Assembly: GCF_964204645.1 (NCBI RefSeq)
Contig: NC_134034.1
Coordinates: forward strand, 13,033,062 to 13,097,061
Length of the DNA stretch: 64,000 bases
Source of the DNA: Tubulanus polymorphus
Taxonomy: Eukaryota; Animalia; Nemertea
Reading direction: 5' to 3'
Within the stretch, counting starts at the first letter, position 1. Each line of letters begins with the position of its first letter. Shown piece after piece: positions 1-4,495 of the stretch. The translations under genes and the position numbers were made by a program. The notes beneath the pieces are model-generated. The model saw only the letters and a list, made by a program, of their open reading frames with translations. It was not told where the DNA came from and did not search any database.

Positions 1-872
1 CCAACATAGTAACAATGAGAAACCATGGTTATAACTGACAAATTTCAAAATGTTCCCAGGGATTATCTTTCTTCCACATCTATGAAACCCAGCCCTGGTG
101 TTCACAGAATACATAATAATTTGCTTCCGAACTGGCAGTTGAGGATTTTAATTTTTGATTCTGTCATTCGCAACACAATTCAAATTGGGTTTTTACGAAT
201 TGTGATGGTCAGATACTAATTTTCGAGTAGATTTTTTAACCGTCGATACAGTCTATACGAGTCCGGAATGCGAAATACGTATTTGGCGAGTGAACGCATT
301 CTGATAATATTGTTTGGTACCGGTATGCATTGGCAATATATACAATAGGCACAAATACAAAAAAAGAACTGCATTAGCGCATTATCAAATGTACGCGTCT
401 CAGTGCACCATTCGGTGTATAATATAATCGTTTTCATACAACTATATATGTAGCCTACAACAAGGCTACTCTACAATATTGATCCATTCGGATATAACTA
501 CGTAATTTTGCGGATATTCTATAGGCGGAATACATCTAAGGTACGTACAAAACGGGGAGGCTCGAATTAATGAATTTGAGTAAATTGAATTACGTGTGTC
601 TTACTTGAATCTGAAAAGAAAGGCCTTAGTGCAGATGTATTAAGTGTGGGCTCTCGTTTGTTACAAGTAAAATCCTGTCGATTGGAATTACATCGGGGAA
701 ATGTCCGGGGAGGAATGATCCAGGGCATGGAACCAACATCCGACTGACATAAGCTAGAAAGAAAGCCAGAAATATAACATACACTAGGAGATAGATTACT
801 GAGCCCCAGTTCGCGCAGTACCTTCCCCTACTGTATGTATATTTGTCGCATATGATTAATTTCAGTTGGAAA

Positions 873-2300
873 ATGGCGACGGTAACTTTGAAAAATTACA
901 CGCGTTCTAAACATCAGATCAGTATGGTGTACGGTGTGGACGATCTACAGTTCACCACTTCATTCTGGTACAACGACGTCGACTTCTATTTGCTAGAGAA
1001 TCTCTACGGCGAGCGGTTCATGCATTGGTTCTATTTCAACCTGGTCGCCTTCGAGATGAACAAGCTGCAGAGCGTCAGACCGAAGTACGTAGATTTCGGC
1101 GAGTACGAACGATTCCATACGGCCGAATTCGAGCGAATTTGGCGCCGACATTTCCGCGGCGCCTATTCGCAATGGCTGTACCAGAACGACCTTGACACTT
1201 ACACGGGTCCCGAGTTCGTACACGCGGCCGCTGACGAATCGAAATACGACGCGGTCGAAATAAAAACGCCGACATCGGCGAAGACAACGGCGAACGAACG
1301 CGCAGTGTTGGTGCTGAACGGCGGGGGAAAGGATAGTTTAGTCAGTATGAGTATATTCGATAAAATCGGGGTCGATTTCGCCAGTGTAGGGGTCAGCGCG
1401 TGCAGACACGGTGTGTCGAAAAAACAACACAAACTCATACGCGACCTGACCGCCGCTACCAATTCTAAACATCACCACCAAATATGGATGTTCGACGACT
1501 TCTTCGACAGCCCCCTAGCGGAAATTCTAGGCGATAAATACGGTATAAAGACCGTCCACGTCGACGAGGTTTTGAGATTCGTAATGTCGATGTTGCCGAT
1601 AGTTCTACAGTACGGATATAGGTTTATCAGTTTAGGCCACGAGAAAAGCGCCGAAGTACCGAATTTCGTGTGGCAGAAGAACGGCCTAGCGATCAACCAT
1701 CAACACGGTAAAAGCCGCCAACAAATCCTCATGTTGAAAGAATATATCAACGAAAATCTGATCAGAAATTGTCACATATTCAGCGTTCTAAAACCGATCA
1801 ACGACGTCGTTATATTCAGCATGTTGAACAGCTTGAACGCGACTGAAGCCGCCTTGACGCACTCGTGTAACCTGGAAAAACCGTGGTGTAAAAAGTGCCC
1901 GAAATGCGCTTACGTTCTGCTCGGTTTCATGGCGTATTTACCGCGCCCGATCGCCGACGATATAACCGGCGAAAACGTTTTGAATCTACCCGAATTACGG
2001 CTGTTCTATCGACAACTTCTCGGATTCGACGATTTCAAACCGTTCGAATGTGTCGGTCTGATCGAGGAAACCCGTCTGGCGTTCGAAATTTGCCGGCGTC
2101 GCGGGTACACCGGCAAGGCTATGGACGACTACAGCGAACGCGTGGACGCGTTGGATTTCCTAACAATAGCCGATGAATTGACGCGGGTAGATTGCGAATA
2201 CGACCAGTTACCCGACGAGTTTCGAGAAGAGATTCTGAAATTTCTGAACGAACACAAGACGATAGCGAGGCGATATGTCGAAAAGTATTTCCAAGATTAG
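873..2300 (+). CDS. MurL-like (UDP-MurNAc-L-Ala-L-Glu epimerase family) PP-loop ATP-dependent enzyme, 475 aa, intronless; bacterial-type
   Basis: Long ORF with motifs in the order I recall for MurL: NGGGKDSLVS (PP-loop), GHEKSA, NHQHGKS, SCN..WCKKCPKC, KPFECVG. ATG 873 has a good context (aaaATGG), 8 nt after a TTTCAG acceptor-like site ending at 865. Confidence 0.75.
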   Translation: MATVTLKNYTRSKHQISMVYGVDDLQFTTSFWYNDVDFYLLENLYGERFMHWFYFNLVAFEMNKLQSVRPKYVDFGEYERFHTAEFERIWRRHFRGAYSQWLYQNDLDTYTGPEFVHAAADESKYDAVEIKTPTSAKTTANERAVLVLNGGGKDSLVSMSIFDKIGVDFASVGVSACRHGVSKKQHKLIRDLTAATNSKHHHQIWMFDDFFDSPLAEILGDKYGIKTVHVDEVLRFVMSMLPIVLQYGYRFISLGHEKSAEVPNFVWQKNGLAINHQHGKSRQQILMLKEYINENLIRNCHIFSVLKPINDVVIFSMLNSLNATEAALTHSCNLEKPWCKKCPKCAYVLLGFMAYLPRPIADDITGENVLNLPELRLFYRQLLGFDDFKPFECVGLIEETRLAFEICRRRGYTGKAMDDYSERVDALDFLTIADELTRVDCEYDQLPDEFREEILKFLNEHKTIARRYVEKYFQD

Positions 2301-3451
2301 AGCAAGAAAAAAAACGAAATCAAGTTGTCTGTCGGACAGTTTTAACTGTGACCTTGAGGTTTTGACTTACGTTAACCCAACTCGAGGTTTGTTCCGTGAC
2401 CCATTGGTTGAATAAAAGAGTAAAGGTAAAACTAGTCTATAAAACCGGTTTGACGATGAATTCATCATAAGATTCCTGCTCCCTTCGCCATTTTTTCTGG
2501 GTCAATATCGAAAAATTGAAGGGGGCAAGGCAACACCATTTTATGTAATTTAAAAAAAAATCAAAAGATTTGAACCAGAGCAGCGTCTTAATCTTTCCGT
2601 GATTCTTTGTTCGTCTTGTAAAACTGGAATAATAATATTGTTGTTAACTAACGTTGTCAAATCGAACACAGCTTTTCGAAACTGCATCGTTTCAAACCAG
2701 TGTTAGTAGCCCTTTATGAGTTTAAACAACAACGCTTATATTTCTACTGAATCGGTTTAATGTTCTGAAATTGATATCGAAAAACGAACTAAACAAAATT
2801 ATGACTAGCTGAAGGATATACATTTCACCTGTCAGTAATATAAGTATATAGGCTTTGCGAGGATTATCAAATCTACGAAAAGAAAATATCAGATATGCTT
2901 TGTATGGGGGAAAGTATGAAATATCATTTATATGAAATAATCTCTGTTTTTCCTGTGAGAATTGATCTTTGAATCATCAGTGGTCGAAACGGCAGTTAAA
3001 CAACGAATAAAGTAACTTTAACAAACCCTCCCCGTGGAGATCCGGATGGTTTGGTCGTCGTAATTTCACGGCTCGCGGACTCGTTATAGTCATTAGGACT
3101 TATTTCGCATTGATCTACTGGAGGTAATTGCGGTGATTACTGCCATTTATTTCCGATCCATAGTCGTCGGTTCATCGAATTATTGCGTTGACAATTGAGA
3201 TGGATTATCAAATTGTGTTTTCGAAGCGAGAGTATAATAATATCCGGCGCAGTTGGATATTGTTTCTAGTTATCGATCGCAGACAATTCAAAAATTGTTT
3301 CGTTCGCAAAATAAAACAGACTTTGCTTTTTTTTCGATGTCGAAATCAAGATTGCCAGTAACCAATCAGAGCTGAGTCGATCGAGTACTATAGAAACCGG
3401 GAGCGAAAATATTTCTGAATTATTCGGGATTCGAACCCGCGTTGGTGAACG

Positions 3452-4495
3452 ATGTCGTCGCACGACGATCAGACGAACCGGAACTCCACCTCCGTCGCGA
3501 CCGTCTGTCGCGTCGATTCGAAAACCTACTTACGCATAGTGGTTAACGTTTACGCCACGTTACCGGTTTGTACCGTAGGATTCGTGTTGAACGTAGTGAC
3601 GTTTTACGTTCTAGCGCGTTACAAAAACGACGTAGCCACCTATTCGATATTGCGCATGTTGGCCGTGTCGGATAACGTCTACCTGGCGATATCGATGACC
3701 TGTTTTCCGGTGCGGTATCTGGTCGGTTTGGCGCAGTACGGCCGGTTGACGTTCCTATTCAAAGAAGACGAAATCTGCCCGATGATCTACCACTACACGG
3801 TCGCCGCTAGAAACATGGCTAAAATGGTCAGGAACTGGATTACGGCTTTGATCAGCCTGGAGCGCACGTCGGTGATCGTGTTTCCGCTACAGGCGCGAAT
3901 CTACGTCACTACCAGGGTTTGTAATCTAGCCGTTGTCGGTATTGTCGGTTTCACGTTCGCCACGCAAGTTTGGCGTTACAATTACAGACAGTTTCAAATG
4001 AGGTCGATCGTCTGCCCGTTCGAAACGGAAGTGATGATCACGGCCGATATTCCCGTGCCAGGGGTGGCTTCGGGTTTCAAACGAACGATGCATATTTTGT
4101 TCATAACGTTTTTGCCGTTTATCGTCATGTTCGCGGCCAACCTGATTTTTGTAGTGTTTCTCACGCGAGCCGCTAAAGCTCGTAAAGCGATGTCCGCTTC
4201 GAAATCTTCGTCAGGCGGTGGTGGCGGCGGCGACCAGTCTAACAACTCGCTCGCCCAACACCAGGCGTCGATTCTCGCCTTCTCCGTAATCGTCGTCTAT
4301 TTGATTTTCGAATTTCCGGTCGCGATCCGGAAGTTGATTTACGTCATAGTGTCCGGTAAAGCGATCGATCCTCGATACGCATTCGAGACGGTTAGCACGT
4401 TCCTCACTCAACTCGATTCCTGCGTTAACTTCCTCGTTTACTGTTTGTCCAGTAGGAAATTTAGGGATCAAGTTCGAAAAAGTTTCGGCGGATGA
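3452..4495 (+). CDS. Intronless class A peptide GPCR, FMRFamide-receptor/sex-peptide-receptor-like, 347 aa
   Basis: 7 hydrophobic segments; N-glycosylation sites in the N-terminus; GFVLN (TM1), LAVSD (TM2), SLERTSVIVFPL (TM3), FEFP (TM6), DSCVNFLVYCLSSRKFR (TM7/H8); AATAAA at 5112-5117. Confidence 0.9.
   Translation: MSSHDDQTNRNSTSVATVCRVDSKTYLRIVVNVYATLPVCTVGFVLNVVTFYVLARYKNDVATYSILRMLAVSDNVYLAISMTCFPVRYLVGLAQYGRLTFLFKEDEICPMIYHYTVAARNMAKMVRNWITALISLERTSVIVFPLQARIYVTTRVCNLAVVGIVGFTFATQVWRYNYRQFQMRSIVCPFETEVMITADIPVPGVASGFKRTMHILFITFLPFIVMFAANLIFVVFLTRAAKARKAMSASKSSSGGGGGGDQSNNSLAQHQASILAFSVIVVYLIFEFPVAIRKLIYVIVSGKAIDPRYAFETVSTFLTQLDSCVNFLVYCLSSRKFRDQVRKSFGG

Follow-up and report, generated by a model that had tools for sequence, protein, structure and literature searches.

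The window analyzed here, a stretch of 64,000 nucleotides, belongs to a 14.3 Mb contig of the nemertean Tubulanus polymorphus. A MurL-like gene is located near its beginning (Table 1). The coding part is a single exon with no internal stops, and every motif listed for it in the original prediction was found: GGGKDS, NHQ (residues 275–277), SCN (331–333), CxxCxxC (CKKCPKC, residues 339–345), and KPFECVG (389–395). The gene was predicted to lie among animal genes, and a GPCR gene, separate from the enzyme gene, indeed starts 1.15 kb downstream of it. A family search with an upstream 529-aa ORF (L103 6170–7756, minus strand) gave no match.

Table 1. Features of the MurL-like gene and its neighbor, in positions of the window.
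Feature	Position	Strand	Description
Non-coding 5' exon	454..540	+	Without ATG; corresponds to letters 1–85 of the X3 contig; 454 is a minimum start because transcription need not begin where a contig ends
5'-UTR spliceosomal intron	541..865	+	GT..AG; donor GTACGT, acceptor TTTCAG; skipped by the X3 contig
Second exon	866..2449	+	7-nt leader, entire coding sequence, roughly 150 nt of 3' UTR; from the X3 contig
Coding sequence	873..2300	+	MurL-superfamily protein with QueC-like PP-loop ATP pyrophosphatase fold; 475 aa from ATG (873) to TAG (2298–2300)
PP-loop GGGKDS (aa 150–155)	1320..1337	+	Motif binding the alpha/beta-phosphates of ATP
Cys cluster C332-x6-C339-x2-C342-x2-C345	1866..1907	+	QueC-type predicted metal site (Zn or Fe-S); CKKCPKC at 1887–1907
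C393 codon (FECVG motif)	2049..2051	+	Candidate catalytic acid/base; role inferred
AATAAA polyadenylation signal	2411..2416	+	113 nt past the stop; read from the sequence
Neighboring animal GPCR gene	3452..4495	+	Pfam 7TM_GPCR_Srw, E 9.4e-11; context

An intron in the 5' UTR had been predicted, and its boundaries agree exactly with a contig of the public run X3 (record 19, 1672 nt, depth 41.8). From its letter 86, this contig matches window 864–2449 (L006 2864–4449). Its letters 1–85 match about window 454–540, so position 540 is joined to 866 exactly across the predicted interval, although the AG dinucleotide can be placed either at the end of exon 1 or at the end of the intron. In the interior of the intron (window 601–800), the depth of X3 is 0, and the same stretch is covered in X1 and X2, which behave like DNA runs. 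The depth of 41.8 recurs at the variants in the 5' exon (L006 2476/2512/2519), and the bin depth of 17.4 there fits the X3 contig. The contig ends 33 nt past AATAAA. The gene is thus apparently transcribed; because the record does not state the kind of run X3, we infer this from the behavior of the contig. In run X5 (2015, putative RNA), no contig was found on the window locus.

The codon style of the enzyme gene resembles that of its neighbor, as proposed. GC3 is 0.63 in the enzyme gene versus 0.65 in the GPCR gene, and the CpG observed/expected ratio is 1.79 versus 1.77. The correlation of RSCU is 0.57 with the GPCR gene and about 0 with bacterial homologues. Overlapping X1 DNA contigs extend from the enzyme gene into the GPCR gene at equal depth (28.6–28.9 over both), which contradicts the chimeric join that the original prediction had named as an alternative. 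Allelic SNPs are present: seven synonymous, seven non-synonymous, and no stops. The spliced 5'-UTR intron, the polyadenylation signal, and the host codon style indicate domestication, which had also been anticipated. Although the coding sequence is intronless and the closest non-self relatives are bacterial, contamination by bacterial DNA or a chimeric join can practically be dismissed, given the intron, the polyadenylation signal, the GPCR-like codons, the DNA contigs running into the GPCR gene, the allelic SNPs, the length of the genomic contig, and the presence of five diverged copies spread over three contigs of chromosome scale.

The protein was originally considered to be a MurL-like peptidoglycan-precursor epimerase. 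The first half of this assignment stands at the level of the superfamily. Both MurL_N (PF26299) and MurL_epimerase_C (PF26298) are present in the precomputed Pfam annotation, and the MurL equivalog model of NCBIfam, NF041275, matches with an E-value of 7.6e-28. A local Pfam scan reported neither domain, probably for want of these two models in the copy used. The score of this match is only 97.2 bits against a cut-off of 700 bits, and only residues 101–408 are covered. In the tree, a long branch with full support (100) separates the worm subfamily from representatives of putative MurL proper. These representatives are clusters whose match to the worm protein is no stronger than that of the MurL model, and they are assumed stand-ins; the identity of the worm protein to them is 21–26%. 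Twelve residues (G152, K153, D154, S331, C332, W338, C339, C342, K344, C345, C393, and G395) are invariant among 113 sequences including the window protein and those of putative MurL proper. The PP-loop, the cluster of four cysteines, the NHQ/KS motifs, and the FECxG motif are shared with MurL. Unlike MurL, the worm subfamily has its own N- and C-terminal parts, which include W32, Y33, W101, W267, D311, and others.

The second half of the assignment, the peptidoglycan precursor as the substrate, is not upheld. Besides the score below the cut-off and the separating branch, the neighbors of the bacterial relatives point to ergothioneine rather than to MurD2. The bacterial relatives have no MurD2 partner; among the annotated neighbor families seen in at least five of the 84 loci of the closest bacterial relatives, no Mur-ligase family is present, while many Atlas clusters with MurL domains are fused to Mur_ligase_M. 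No signal peptide is evident in the worm protein. To our knowledge, animals neither synthesize peptidoglycan nor contain cytosolic UDP-MurNAc peptides. That the worm protein is a true MurL is therefore extremely unlikely, despite the automatic name given by NCBI, the match to NF041275, and the catalytic residues common to putative MurL proper. The worm protein is a member of a distinct, uncharacterized subfamily of the MurL superfamily, separate from MurL proper.

The AlphaFold2 model of the 475-aa protein has a pLDDT of 96. The top matches in Foldseek are QueC structures (2pg3/3bl5; probability 1.00, TM by target 0.64–0.70), and QatC, Cap9, and TtuA are among the best. A PDB sequence search with the worm protein gave no match, and we know of no solved structure for any MurL-family protein. 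As in QueC, QatC, and Cap9, a PP-loop core is followed by a metal site of the C-x(n)-C-x2-C-x2-C type, and QueC also adenylates a carboxylate. The identity to these proteins is 12–15%, however, and the worm protein has no 7-deazaguanine context. It is twice as long and has an extra N-terminal beta/alpha domain (residues 1–105) and a C-terminal helical domain. It is very likely a PP-loop adenylating enzyme. MurL requires ATP and Mg and produces AMP (PMC5808125; PMC8788868), and the ATP-to-AMP activation of a carboxylate is presumably shared.

Based on the phylogeny, the five copies in Tubulanus constitute one clade (SH-aLRT 99–100) nested inside bacterial sequences, in agreement with the bacterial origin that had been suggested. 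The nearest relative in a representative set of 1.84 billion proteins shows 42% identity. Relatives were found in 319 bacterial species when the species genomes of 185,579 bacteria and archaea were scanned. Among the best 120 matches of each of two listings (5.8 billion protein clusters), the only other match labeled as eukaryotic is from the bdelloid rotifer Adineta ricciae; the distribution in animals is patchy, as expected. In the papers searched, the family is not reported from animals and the gene is not named in any animal. A set of Thiotrichales/Beggiatoaceae sequences is sister to the Tubulanus clade in one tree (support 96). It may hint at the donor, but it is only a lead because the relation is not recovered clearly in two other trees. 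P0161, a weak sister of the worm clade, as well as P0025/P0028, were considered as eukaryotic and rejected; their contigs are bacterial, with a DAO fusion beside PhyH, and with two-component genes and a DnaB-intein.

A broadly conserved eukaryotic PP-loop family, the other alternative named originally, does not fit these results, because the best matches are bacterial and only two animal species appear among the matches listed. An old eukaryotic family could also have been inherited vertically and lost from most animals. The Adineta homologue adjoins an intron-bearing EF-hand gene, and a clade of Tubulanus and Adineta is not rejected by the AU test (p 0.43; LG+G4, 36 rows only). Homologues with low similarity have been mentioned in a fungus and an amoeba (PMC5808125). 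Vertical inheritance is nevertheless hardly credible: only two animal species are among the best 120 matches of the two listings, the two animal groups are both inside bacterial diversity and apart from each other in the larger tree, and there are no introns in the coding sequences. Bdelloid rotifers are well known to take up bacterial genes. The Tubulanus gene resembles other bacterial genes domesticated in animals, for instance the many foreign genes of bdelloids: a UTR intron, a polyadenylation signal, and host codons were added to a bacterial coding sequence that has no introns itself, and duplication under purifying selection followed. The differences are that the recipient here is a nemertean and that the enzyme family is almost unstudied. 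In all probability, a bacterial gene was horizontally transferred into the nemertean lineage and then domesticated.

Five copies, all intact and intronless, are present in the T. polymorphus genome. Three stand in tandem on C1, and C9 and C10 have one each; all three contigs are of chromosome scale. A pyrimidine-rich acceptor is seen 4–12 nt ahead of the ATG in all five. The dN/dS values among the recent duplicates, the tandem copies on C1, are 0.18–0.23, and the reading frames of all five copies are open despite saturated dS between loci. These facts indicate that purifying selection acted after the transfer. The window copy is the fastest-evolving and most divergent paralogue, with the longest branch (0.7–0.98) and amino-acid divergence of 46–48% from the others. 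Six positions that are nearly invariant in the subfamily have non-consensus residues in this copy (N56, L102, H179, M238, H278, and L375). Given these departures, its substrate may have shifted. The long branch, the departures from the consensus, and the lack of a contig on the locus in run X5 might suggest that an old transfer left a relic that is now decaying and has no function. The open frames, the low dN/dS of the tandem copies, the spliced contig, and the intact catalytic motifs make this very improbable.

The gene neighborhoods of the bacterial relatives could shed light on the substrate. EgtB- and/or EgtD-like genes are present within 8–10 kb in 27 of 84 bacterial loci (EgtB-like in 23, EgtD-like in 21). 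About two thirds of the loci have no ergothioneine gene in the flank, and many such contigs are short. At the locus L011, a true EgtB (550 bits, cut-off 360) and a true EgtD (304 bits, cut-off 291) are encoded directly upstream. A fused permease-OpuAC importer of the betaine-type ABC class, which has the architecture of EgtU, is seen in 13 of the 84 loci and in at least five phyla. EgtD is encoded in 42 of 50 carrier genomes, versus 65 of the 201 Bacteroidota sampled. In operons, bacterial orthologues of the worm gene neighbor genes of the ergothioneine clusters (EgtB, EgtD, EgtE, and MES) and of the EgtUV importer. Cultured carriers include Nocardioides sp. Root682, Streptomyces gamaensis, Archangium violaceum, and Nannocystis radixulma. 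In the literature searched, no link between this family and ergothioneine was found, and the MES paper is silent on such a neighbor. It seems reasonably plausible, on balance, that the bacterial enzymes act on a thiohistidine-related substrate.

Replacement of the EgtE lyase by the MurL-like gene was considered as well, and it is weakened by L082, L083, and L014, in which an EgtE-like gene or one for a class-V aminotransferase is present as well. Because L082 has an EgtE-like lyase beside EgtB, EgtD, and the MurL-like gene, the enzyme would represent an extra step and not an obvious substitute for a known one. The published ergothioneine pathways are not known to include a PP-loop enzyme, and none was found in the literature searched.

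A reaction can be proposed from these motifs and contexts. ATP would be bound at the GGGKDS loop and the carboxylate of the substrate would be adenylated, with PPi released and AMP leaving later. The set of E257, N275-H276-Q277, K280-S281, and C393 would then act at the activated alpha-carbon. If MurL is taken as the model, one-way L-to-D epimerization would be the simplest outcome. The likeliest class of substrate could be a thiohistidine betaine or its cysteine-adduct intermediate, rather than a peptidoglycan precursor; this type of substrate is suggested by the embedding of the bacterial genes in clusters for ergothioneine biosynthesis and betaine import. The idea of adenylation chemistry or D-residue installation, put forward in the original prediction, is compatible with the evidence, on a different substrate. 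As a whole, the joint explanation that comprises transfer, domestication, a distinct PP-loop subfamily, and a thiohistidine-linked class of substrate appears probable.

In the worm genome, searches with an EgtD protein and with the family model did not find EgtD, and therefore the worm would not synthesize ergothioneine by the known route, although it has the MurL-like gene. Animals take up and accumulate dietary ergothioneine and are not known to make it (EgtU preprint). The worm genome also contains a multi-exon OvoA-like gene. Because of the dietary accumulation and the OvoA-like gene, thiohistidine substrates are available in the worm. A thiohistidine-related substrate in the worm, too, is conceivable, with the odds somewhat against it.

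It can be speculated further that an ATP-dependent step of thiohistidine (ergothioneine or ovothiol) metabolism, not described so far, was captured and multiplied by the worm for dietary ergothioneine or for the product of OvoA. The enzyme could then, for example, epimerize in one direction or cleave the C-S bond independently of PLP, and the alpha-carboxylate of ergothioneine, hercynine, or histidyl-cysteine sulfoxide would be adenylated. This specific scenario is rather improbable.

Domestication for a job other than thiohistidine chemistry, such as epimerization or amidation at the C-terminus of a peptide or small molecule specific to the worm (toxin or pigment chemistry), is rather unlikely. 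In that case, the neighborhoods of the bacterial genes would say nothing more about the function in the animal. It is favored by the absence of EgtD, by the presence of five copies with the window copy far diverged from the others, and by the six altered near-invariant positions. Every superfamily-invariant residue is kept in the window copy, however, and contact with secreted peptides is unlikely because no secretory signal is evident. The availability of thiohistidine substrates also speaks for the thiohistidine-related substrate.

The gene represents a bacterial-to-animal transfer outside the usual recipients, and a single locus shows physical linkage, splicing, codon amelioration, and duplication with purifying selection. 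It is no longer paradoxical, as it had seemed, that an animal should have a peptidoglycan enzyme, as the gene is from a sister subfamily with a bacterial context that points to ergothioneine. If the link to ergothioneine is true, it would provide a lead to the function of a family found in 319 species, and the worm and the cultured carriers would be places to seek an unrecognized ATP-dependent step of thiohistidine metabolism. If such a step was indeed captured by the worm, a bacterial step would have been added to the thiol-antioxidant chemistry of an animal.

The MurL-like ORF is present in full as originally predicted, with all motifs listed for it (Table). Against the NCBIfam MurL model NF041275, its protein scores 97 bits (E 7.6e-28) over residues 101–408 only, and the curated cut-off of this model is 700 bits. 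No match was seen in the local Pfam scan or in the PDB sequence search. In the large protein search, the precomputed Pfam annotation gives MurL_N (PF26299) and MurL_epimerase_C (PF26298) in the window protein and in all of its relatives.

Table. The window gene, its motifs and neighbor, and the copies in the worm genome (nucleotide positions are those of the window).
Feature	Position	Strand	Remarks
MurL-like ORF	873–2300	+	ATG to TAG, 475 codons, uninterrupted
GGGKDS	aa 150–155		window ORF
NHQ	aa 275–277		window ORF
SCN	aa 331–333		window ORF
CKKCPKC	aa 339–345		window ORF
KPFECVG	aa 389–395		window ORF
GPCR gene	3452–4495		animal chemoreceptor type (7TM_GPCR_Srw), downstream of window ORF
Window copy	C10		contig of 14,301,023 bp
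Second copy	C9		55% identical to window copy
Three tandem copies	C1		~3 kb apart, 53% identical to window copy

Contigs from public sequencing runs were placed on a 6-kb stretch, L006, whose positions are those of the window + 2000. Run X1 behaves as genomic DNA: its overlapping contigs, at a depth of 28.6–28.9 and with allelic differences, lead from the intron across the ORF and on into the GPCR gene. Run X3, whose type is not on record, behaves as cDNA, judged by its contigs. Contig record 19 of X3 (1672 nt, depth 41.8) aligns to window 864–2449 only from letter 86 on. A single X3 contig, also of depth 41.8, carries the variants at L006 positions 2476, 2512, and 2519, in a piece corresponding to about window 454–540. 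The X3 bin depths of 17.4 and 28.7 match an 85-nt and a 137-nt piece, and the depth is zero within window 601–800. The join 540|866 spans GTACGT...TTTCAG, where the letters AG can be assigned to the exon end or the intron end; the intron skipped is exactly the one predicted in the 5'-UTR (541–865). The spliced leader contains no ATG ahead of position 873, and the X3 contig stops 33 nt beyond AATAAA at 2411–2416. The window gene looks transcribed. A pyrimidine-rich AG acceptor lies 4–12 nt upstream of the start codon in each of the five paralogues, which fits an intron gain predating the duplications.

The codon style is host-like, as had been proposed. GC3 is 0.63 in the window ORF versus 0.65 in the neighboring GPCR gene, and CpG o/e is 1.79 versus 1.77. 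RSCU values of the ORF correlate with those of the GPCR gene (r = 0.57), but not with those of the Thiomargarita, Parabeggiatoa, and Chitinophagales homologues (~0). Bacterial contamination or a chimeric join is a very unlikely source of the window gene, given the continuity of X1 contigs into the GPCR gene, the splice join in X3, and the shared codon style.

The window has 40% GC. Within it, both the ORF and the GPCR gene are strongly CpG-enriched (o/e ~1.8, GC3 ~0.64), whereas the C1 paralogues are not (o/e ~1.05); the codon style thus seems to follow the local chromosomal setting. At L006:1–200, 401–1400, and 2001–2200 (window −2000 to 200), contig depths in all three runs range from thousands to ~50,000 with many rearranged joints, indicating high-copy repeats just upstream of the window gene. 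Located 2.2–3.8 kb upstream of the window start is an ORF of 529 aa (L103:6170–7756, minus strand) that lacks introns and has a membrane anchor at its N-terminus. It is without a Pfam or NCBIfam match, and its sole PDB sequence match is weak (E ~7e-4).

A six-frame search of the T. polymorphus assembly (268 Mb, 77 contigs) revealed five intact copies without internal stops; those of C9 and C1 are on two contigs of 16,481,795 and 32,063,560 bp. Two NCBI proteins named [quoted passage not shown] are exact translations of C9/C1 loci. The closest matches of the window protein are these paralogues from the same worm, a palaeonemertean. Synonymous substitutions have reached saturation between the C10, C9, and C1 loci, whose proteins are 52–69% identical; the three tandem copies on C1 differ from one another with a dN/dS of 0.18–0.23. 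When the run contigs are compared with the assembly, the window ORF shows 7 synonymous and 7 non-synonymous differences and 0 stops; the sample is small and would fit moderate constraint. Of the worm paralogues, the window copy is on the longest branch. It departs from the consensus of its subfamily, the relatives set apart from MurL proper, at six near-invariant positions (N56, L102, H179, M238, H278, and L375), and retains all residues invariant superfamily-wide.

An exhaustive representative search of 1.84 billion proteins yielded 1687 clusters at E ≤ 0.001, of which 100 reach E ≤ 1e-30; the top match shares 42% identity with the window protein. The five worm proteins group as a single clade (SH-aLRT 99) in a tree of 107 rows, within a supported bacterial/metagenomic set. 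Between the subfamily and the representatives presumed to be MurL proper, which match the query at only ~100 bits over residues 85–410, the branch measures 1.43 + 1.43 substitutions per site (support 100). When one genome per bacterial or archaeal species was scanned, relatives turned up in many phyla, in 319 species altogether. Top matches there are from the sulfur bacteria Thiomargarita, Thiotrichaceae, Ca. Parabeggiatoa, and Marithrix, and from Chloroflexia. With the slower-evolving C9 paralogue as a query, bacterial matches reach 50% identity, in a cluster including Ca. Parabeggiatoa.

The C9 query also detected one further animal, the bdelloid rotifer Adineta ricciae, with two near-identical entries (CAJNOR010008062.1 / CAJNOR010011262.1; L098:1314–2846, L097). 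Both are intronless and share 45% identity with the C9 copy of the worm. The 5.9-kb contig of one of them also carries, 2.3 kb away, an EF-hand gene; its 132-aa product extends across 673 nt, so this gene has an intron. A tree of 63 rows places the worm clade as sister to a Thiotrichales/Beggiatoaceae set (support 96), with Adineta elsewhere; a joint Tubulanus + Adineta clade is not rejected by the AU test under a simpler model (p 0.43). The Adineta homologue is probably a separate capture of a bacterial gene. A MurL review mentions homologues of low similarity in a fungus and an amoeba (PMC5808125). The direction of transfer, from bacteria to animal, is clear. The expected nesting among bacterial sequences and patchy distribution in animals are both seen, and horizontal transfer followed by domestication is strongly supported by a worm clade inside the bacterial set, splicing, and host codon style.

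ORFs were called in 84 bacterial loci with a subfamily gene, neighbors were clustered, and representatives were annotated by Pfam and NCBIfam. A DinB_2 + FGE-sulfatase sulfoxide synthase (EgtB-like) is seen in 23 loci and Methyltransf_33 (EgtD-like) in 21, with either present in 27. Other neighbors are a ProV-type ABC ATPase (23 loci), a permease-OpuAC fusion built like the ergothioneine importer EgtU (13 loci), and a class-V aminotransferase (6 loci), which is either free-standing (EgtE-like) or joined to a molybdopterin domain. The latter fusion resembles metallopterin-dependent ergothioneine synthase in architecture. In a Chitinophagales genome, EgtB (550 bits, cut-off 360), EgtD (304 bits, cut-off 291), and the MurL-like gene follow in that order on one strand with gaps of 6–50 nt. 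The order in a Saprospiraceae MAG (L082) is EgtE-like, EgtB, MurL-like, EgtD, ABC ATPase, and permease-OpuAC. Carriers with such a context belong to Pseudomonadota, Bacteroidota, Acidobacteriota, Myxococcota, and Chloroflexota. At the level of whole genomes, 42 of 50 carriers encode EgtD (40 above the curated cut-off), against a baseline, from a single phylum, of 65 of 201 evenly drawn Bacteroidota. Atlas clusters with MurL domains are frequently fused to Mur_ligase_M, whereas no Mur ligase is among the annotated neighbor families of the subfamily (those in ≥5 of the 84 loci). No paper in the literature searched links the MurL-like family to ergothioneine.

An unannotated radical-SAM protein of ~514 aa directly adjoins the gene in 9 of the 84 loci, mostly Beggiatoaceae/Thiotrichaceae (L008:11413–12954, L020:9412–10914, and seven more); it has only a sub-threshold Radical_SAM match and no NCBIfam family. 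The EgtB-like neighbor in a Myxococcales locus (L058:4994–6277; also similar loci) scores 155–176 bits, far under the EgtB, SenA, and OvoA cut-offs, and may be a distinct sulfoxide synthase type. In a metagenomic locus (L095:128–1615), a DAO (FAD oxidoreductase) domain is fused to MurL-like domains, followed by a PhyH dioxygenase gene.

The AlphaFold2 model of the worm protein (113-sequence alignment; pLDDT 96.1, pTM 0.94) contains an N-terminal beta/alpha domain (aa 1–105), a Rossmann-like core that opens with the PP-loop, and a C-terminal part made of helices. The best solved Foldseek matches are QueC structures (2pg3 and 3bl5; TM by target 0.64–0.70), next the QueC-like QatC and Cap9, and then TtuA, MnmA, ThiI, TilS, argininosuccinate synthetase, and NAD synthetase. 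The predicted fold places the protein among the PP-loop ATP pyrophosphatases, which adenylate carbonyl or carboxylate oxygen. Besides the fold, the worm protein shares a similar Cys4 pattern with QueC: its C-x6-C-x2-C-x2-C presumably resembles the QueC zinc site and is a putative metal site.

All 113 aligned members, including the putative MurL-proper rows, share G152, K153, D154, S331, C332, W338, C339, C342, K344, C345, C393, and G395; E257, S259, N275, H276, Q277, K280, S281, and S304 are almost invariant. MurL requires ATP and Mg2+, forms AMP, and acts in the L-to-D direction only, and adenylation of the Glu alpha-carboxylate was proposed by its authors (PMC5808125; PMC8788868). The common catalytic set suggests the same chemistry for the worm enzyme: the substrate carboxylate would be adenylated, and chemistry at the alpha-carbon would follow. 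While keeping these invariant residues, the subfamily differs from the putative MurL-proper rows at W32, Y33, H56, G76, F86, W101, R102, P214, W267, D311, Y347, and G414, among others, which points to a substrate other than that of MurL.

The function originally proposed, peptidoglycan-precursor epimerase, does not fit the score far below the MurL cut-off, the long separating branch, the lack of a Mur ligase among the annotated neighbor families, or the ergothioneine-type context. That label should be dropped in favor of [quoted passage not shown].

In the worm genome, EgtD has no match by protein query or family model, and ergothioneine is probably not produced there by the known route. The worm could take it up with the diet, as animals generally do (EgtU preprint). 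A multi-exon OvoA-like gene (5-histidylcysteine sulfoxide synthase; G000:C1:5706239–5710433, L099–L102), with eight exon matches covering TIGR04344 positions 29–444, indicates by homology that the worm has thiohistidine chemistry of its own. The best-supported function for the worm protein is an ATP-dependent adenylating enzyme, putatively descended from an ergothioneine-cluster accessory enzyme. Its predicted substrate is a thiohistidine-type or similar carboxylate, and the outcome might be epimerization, elimination, or amidation.
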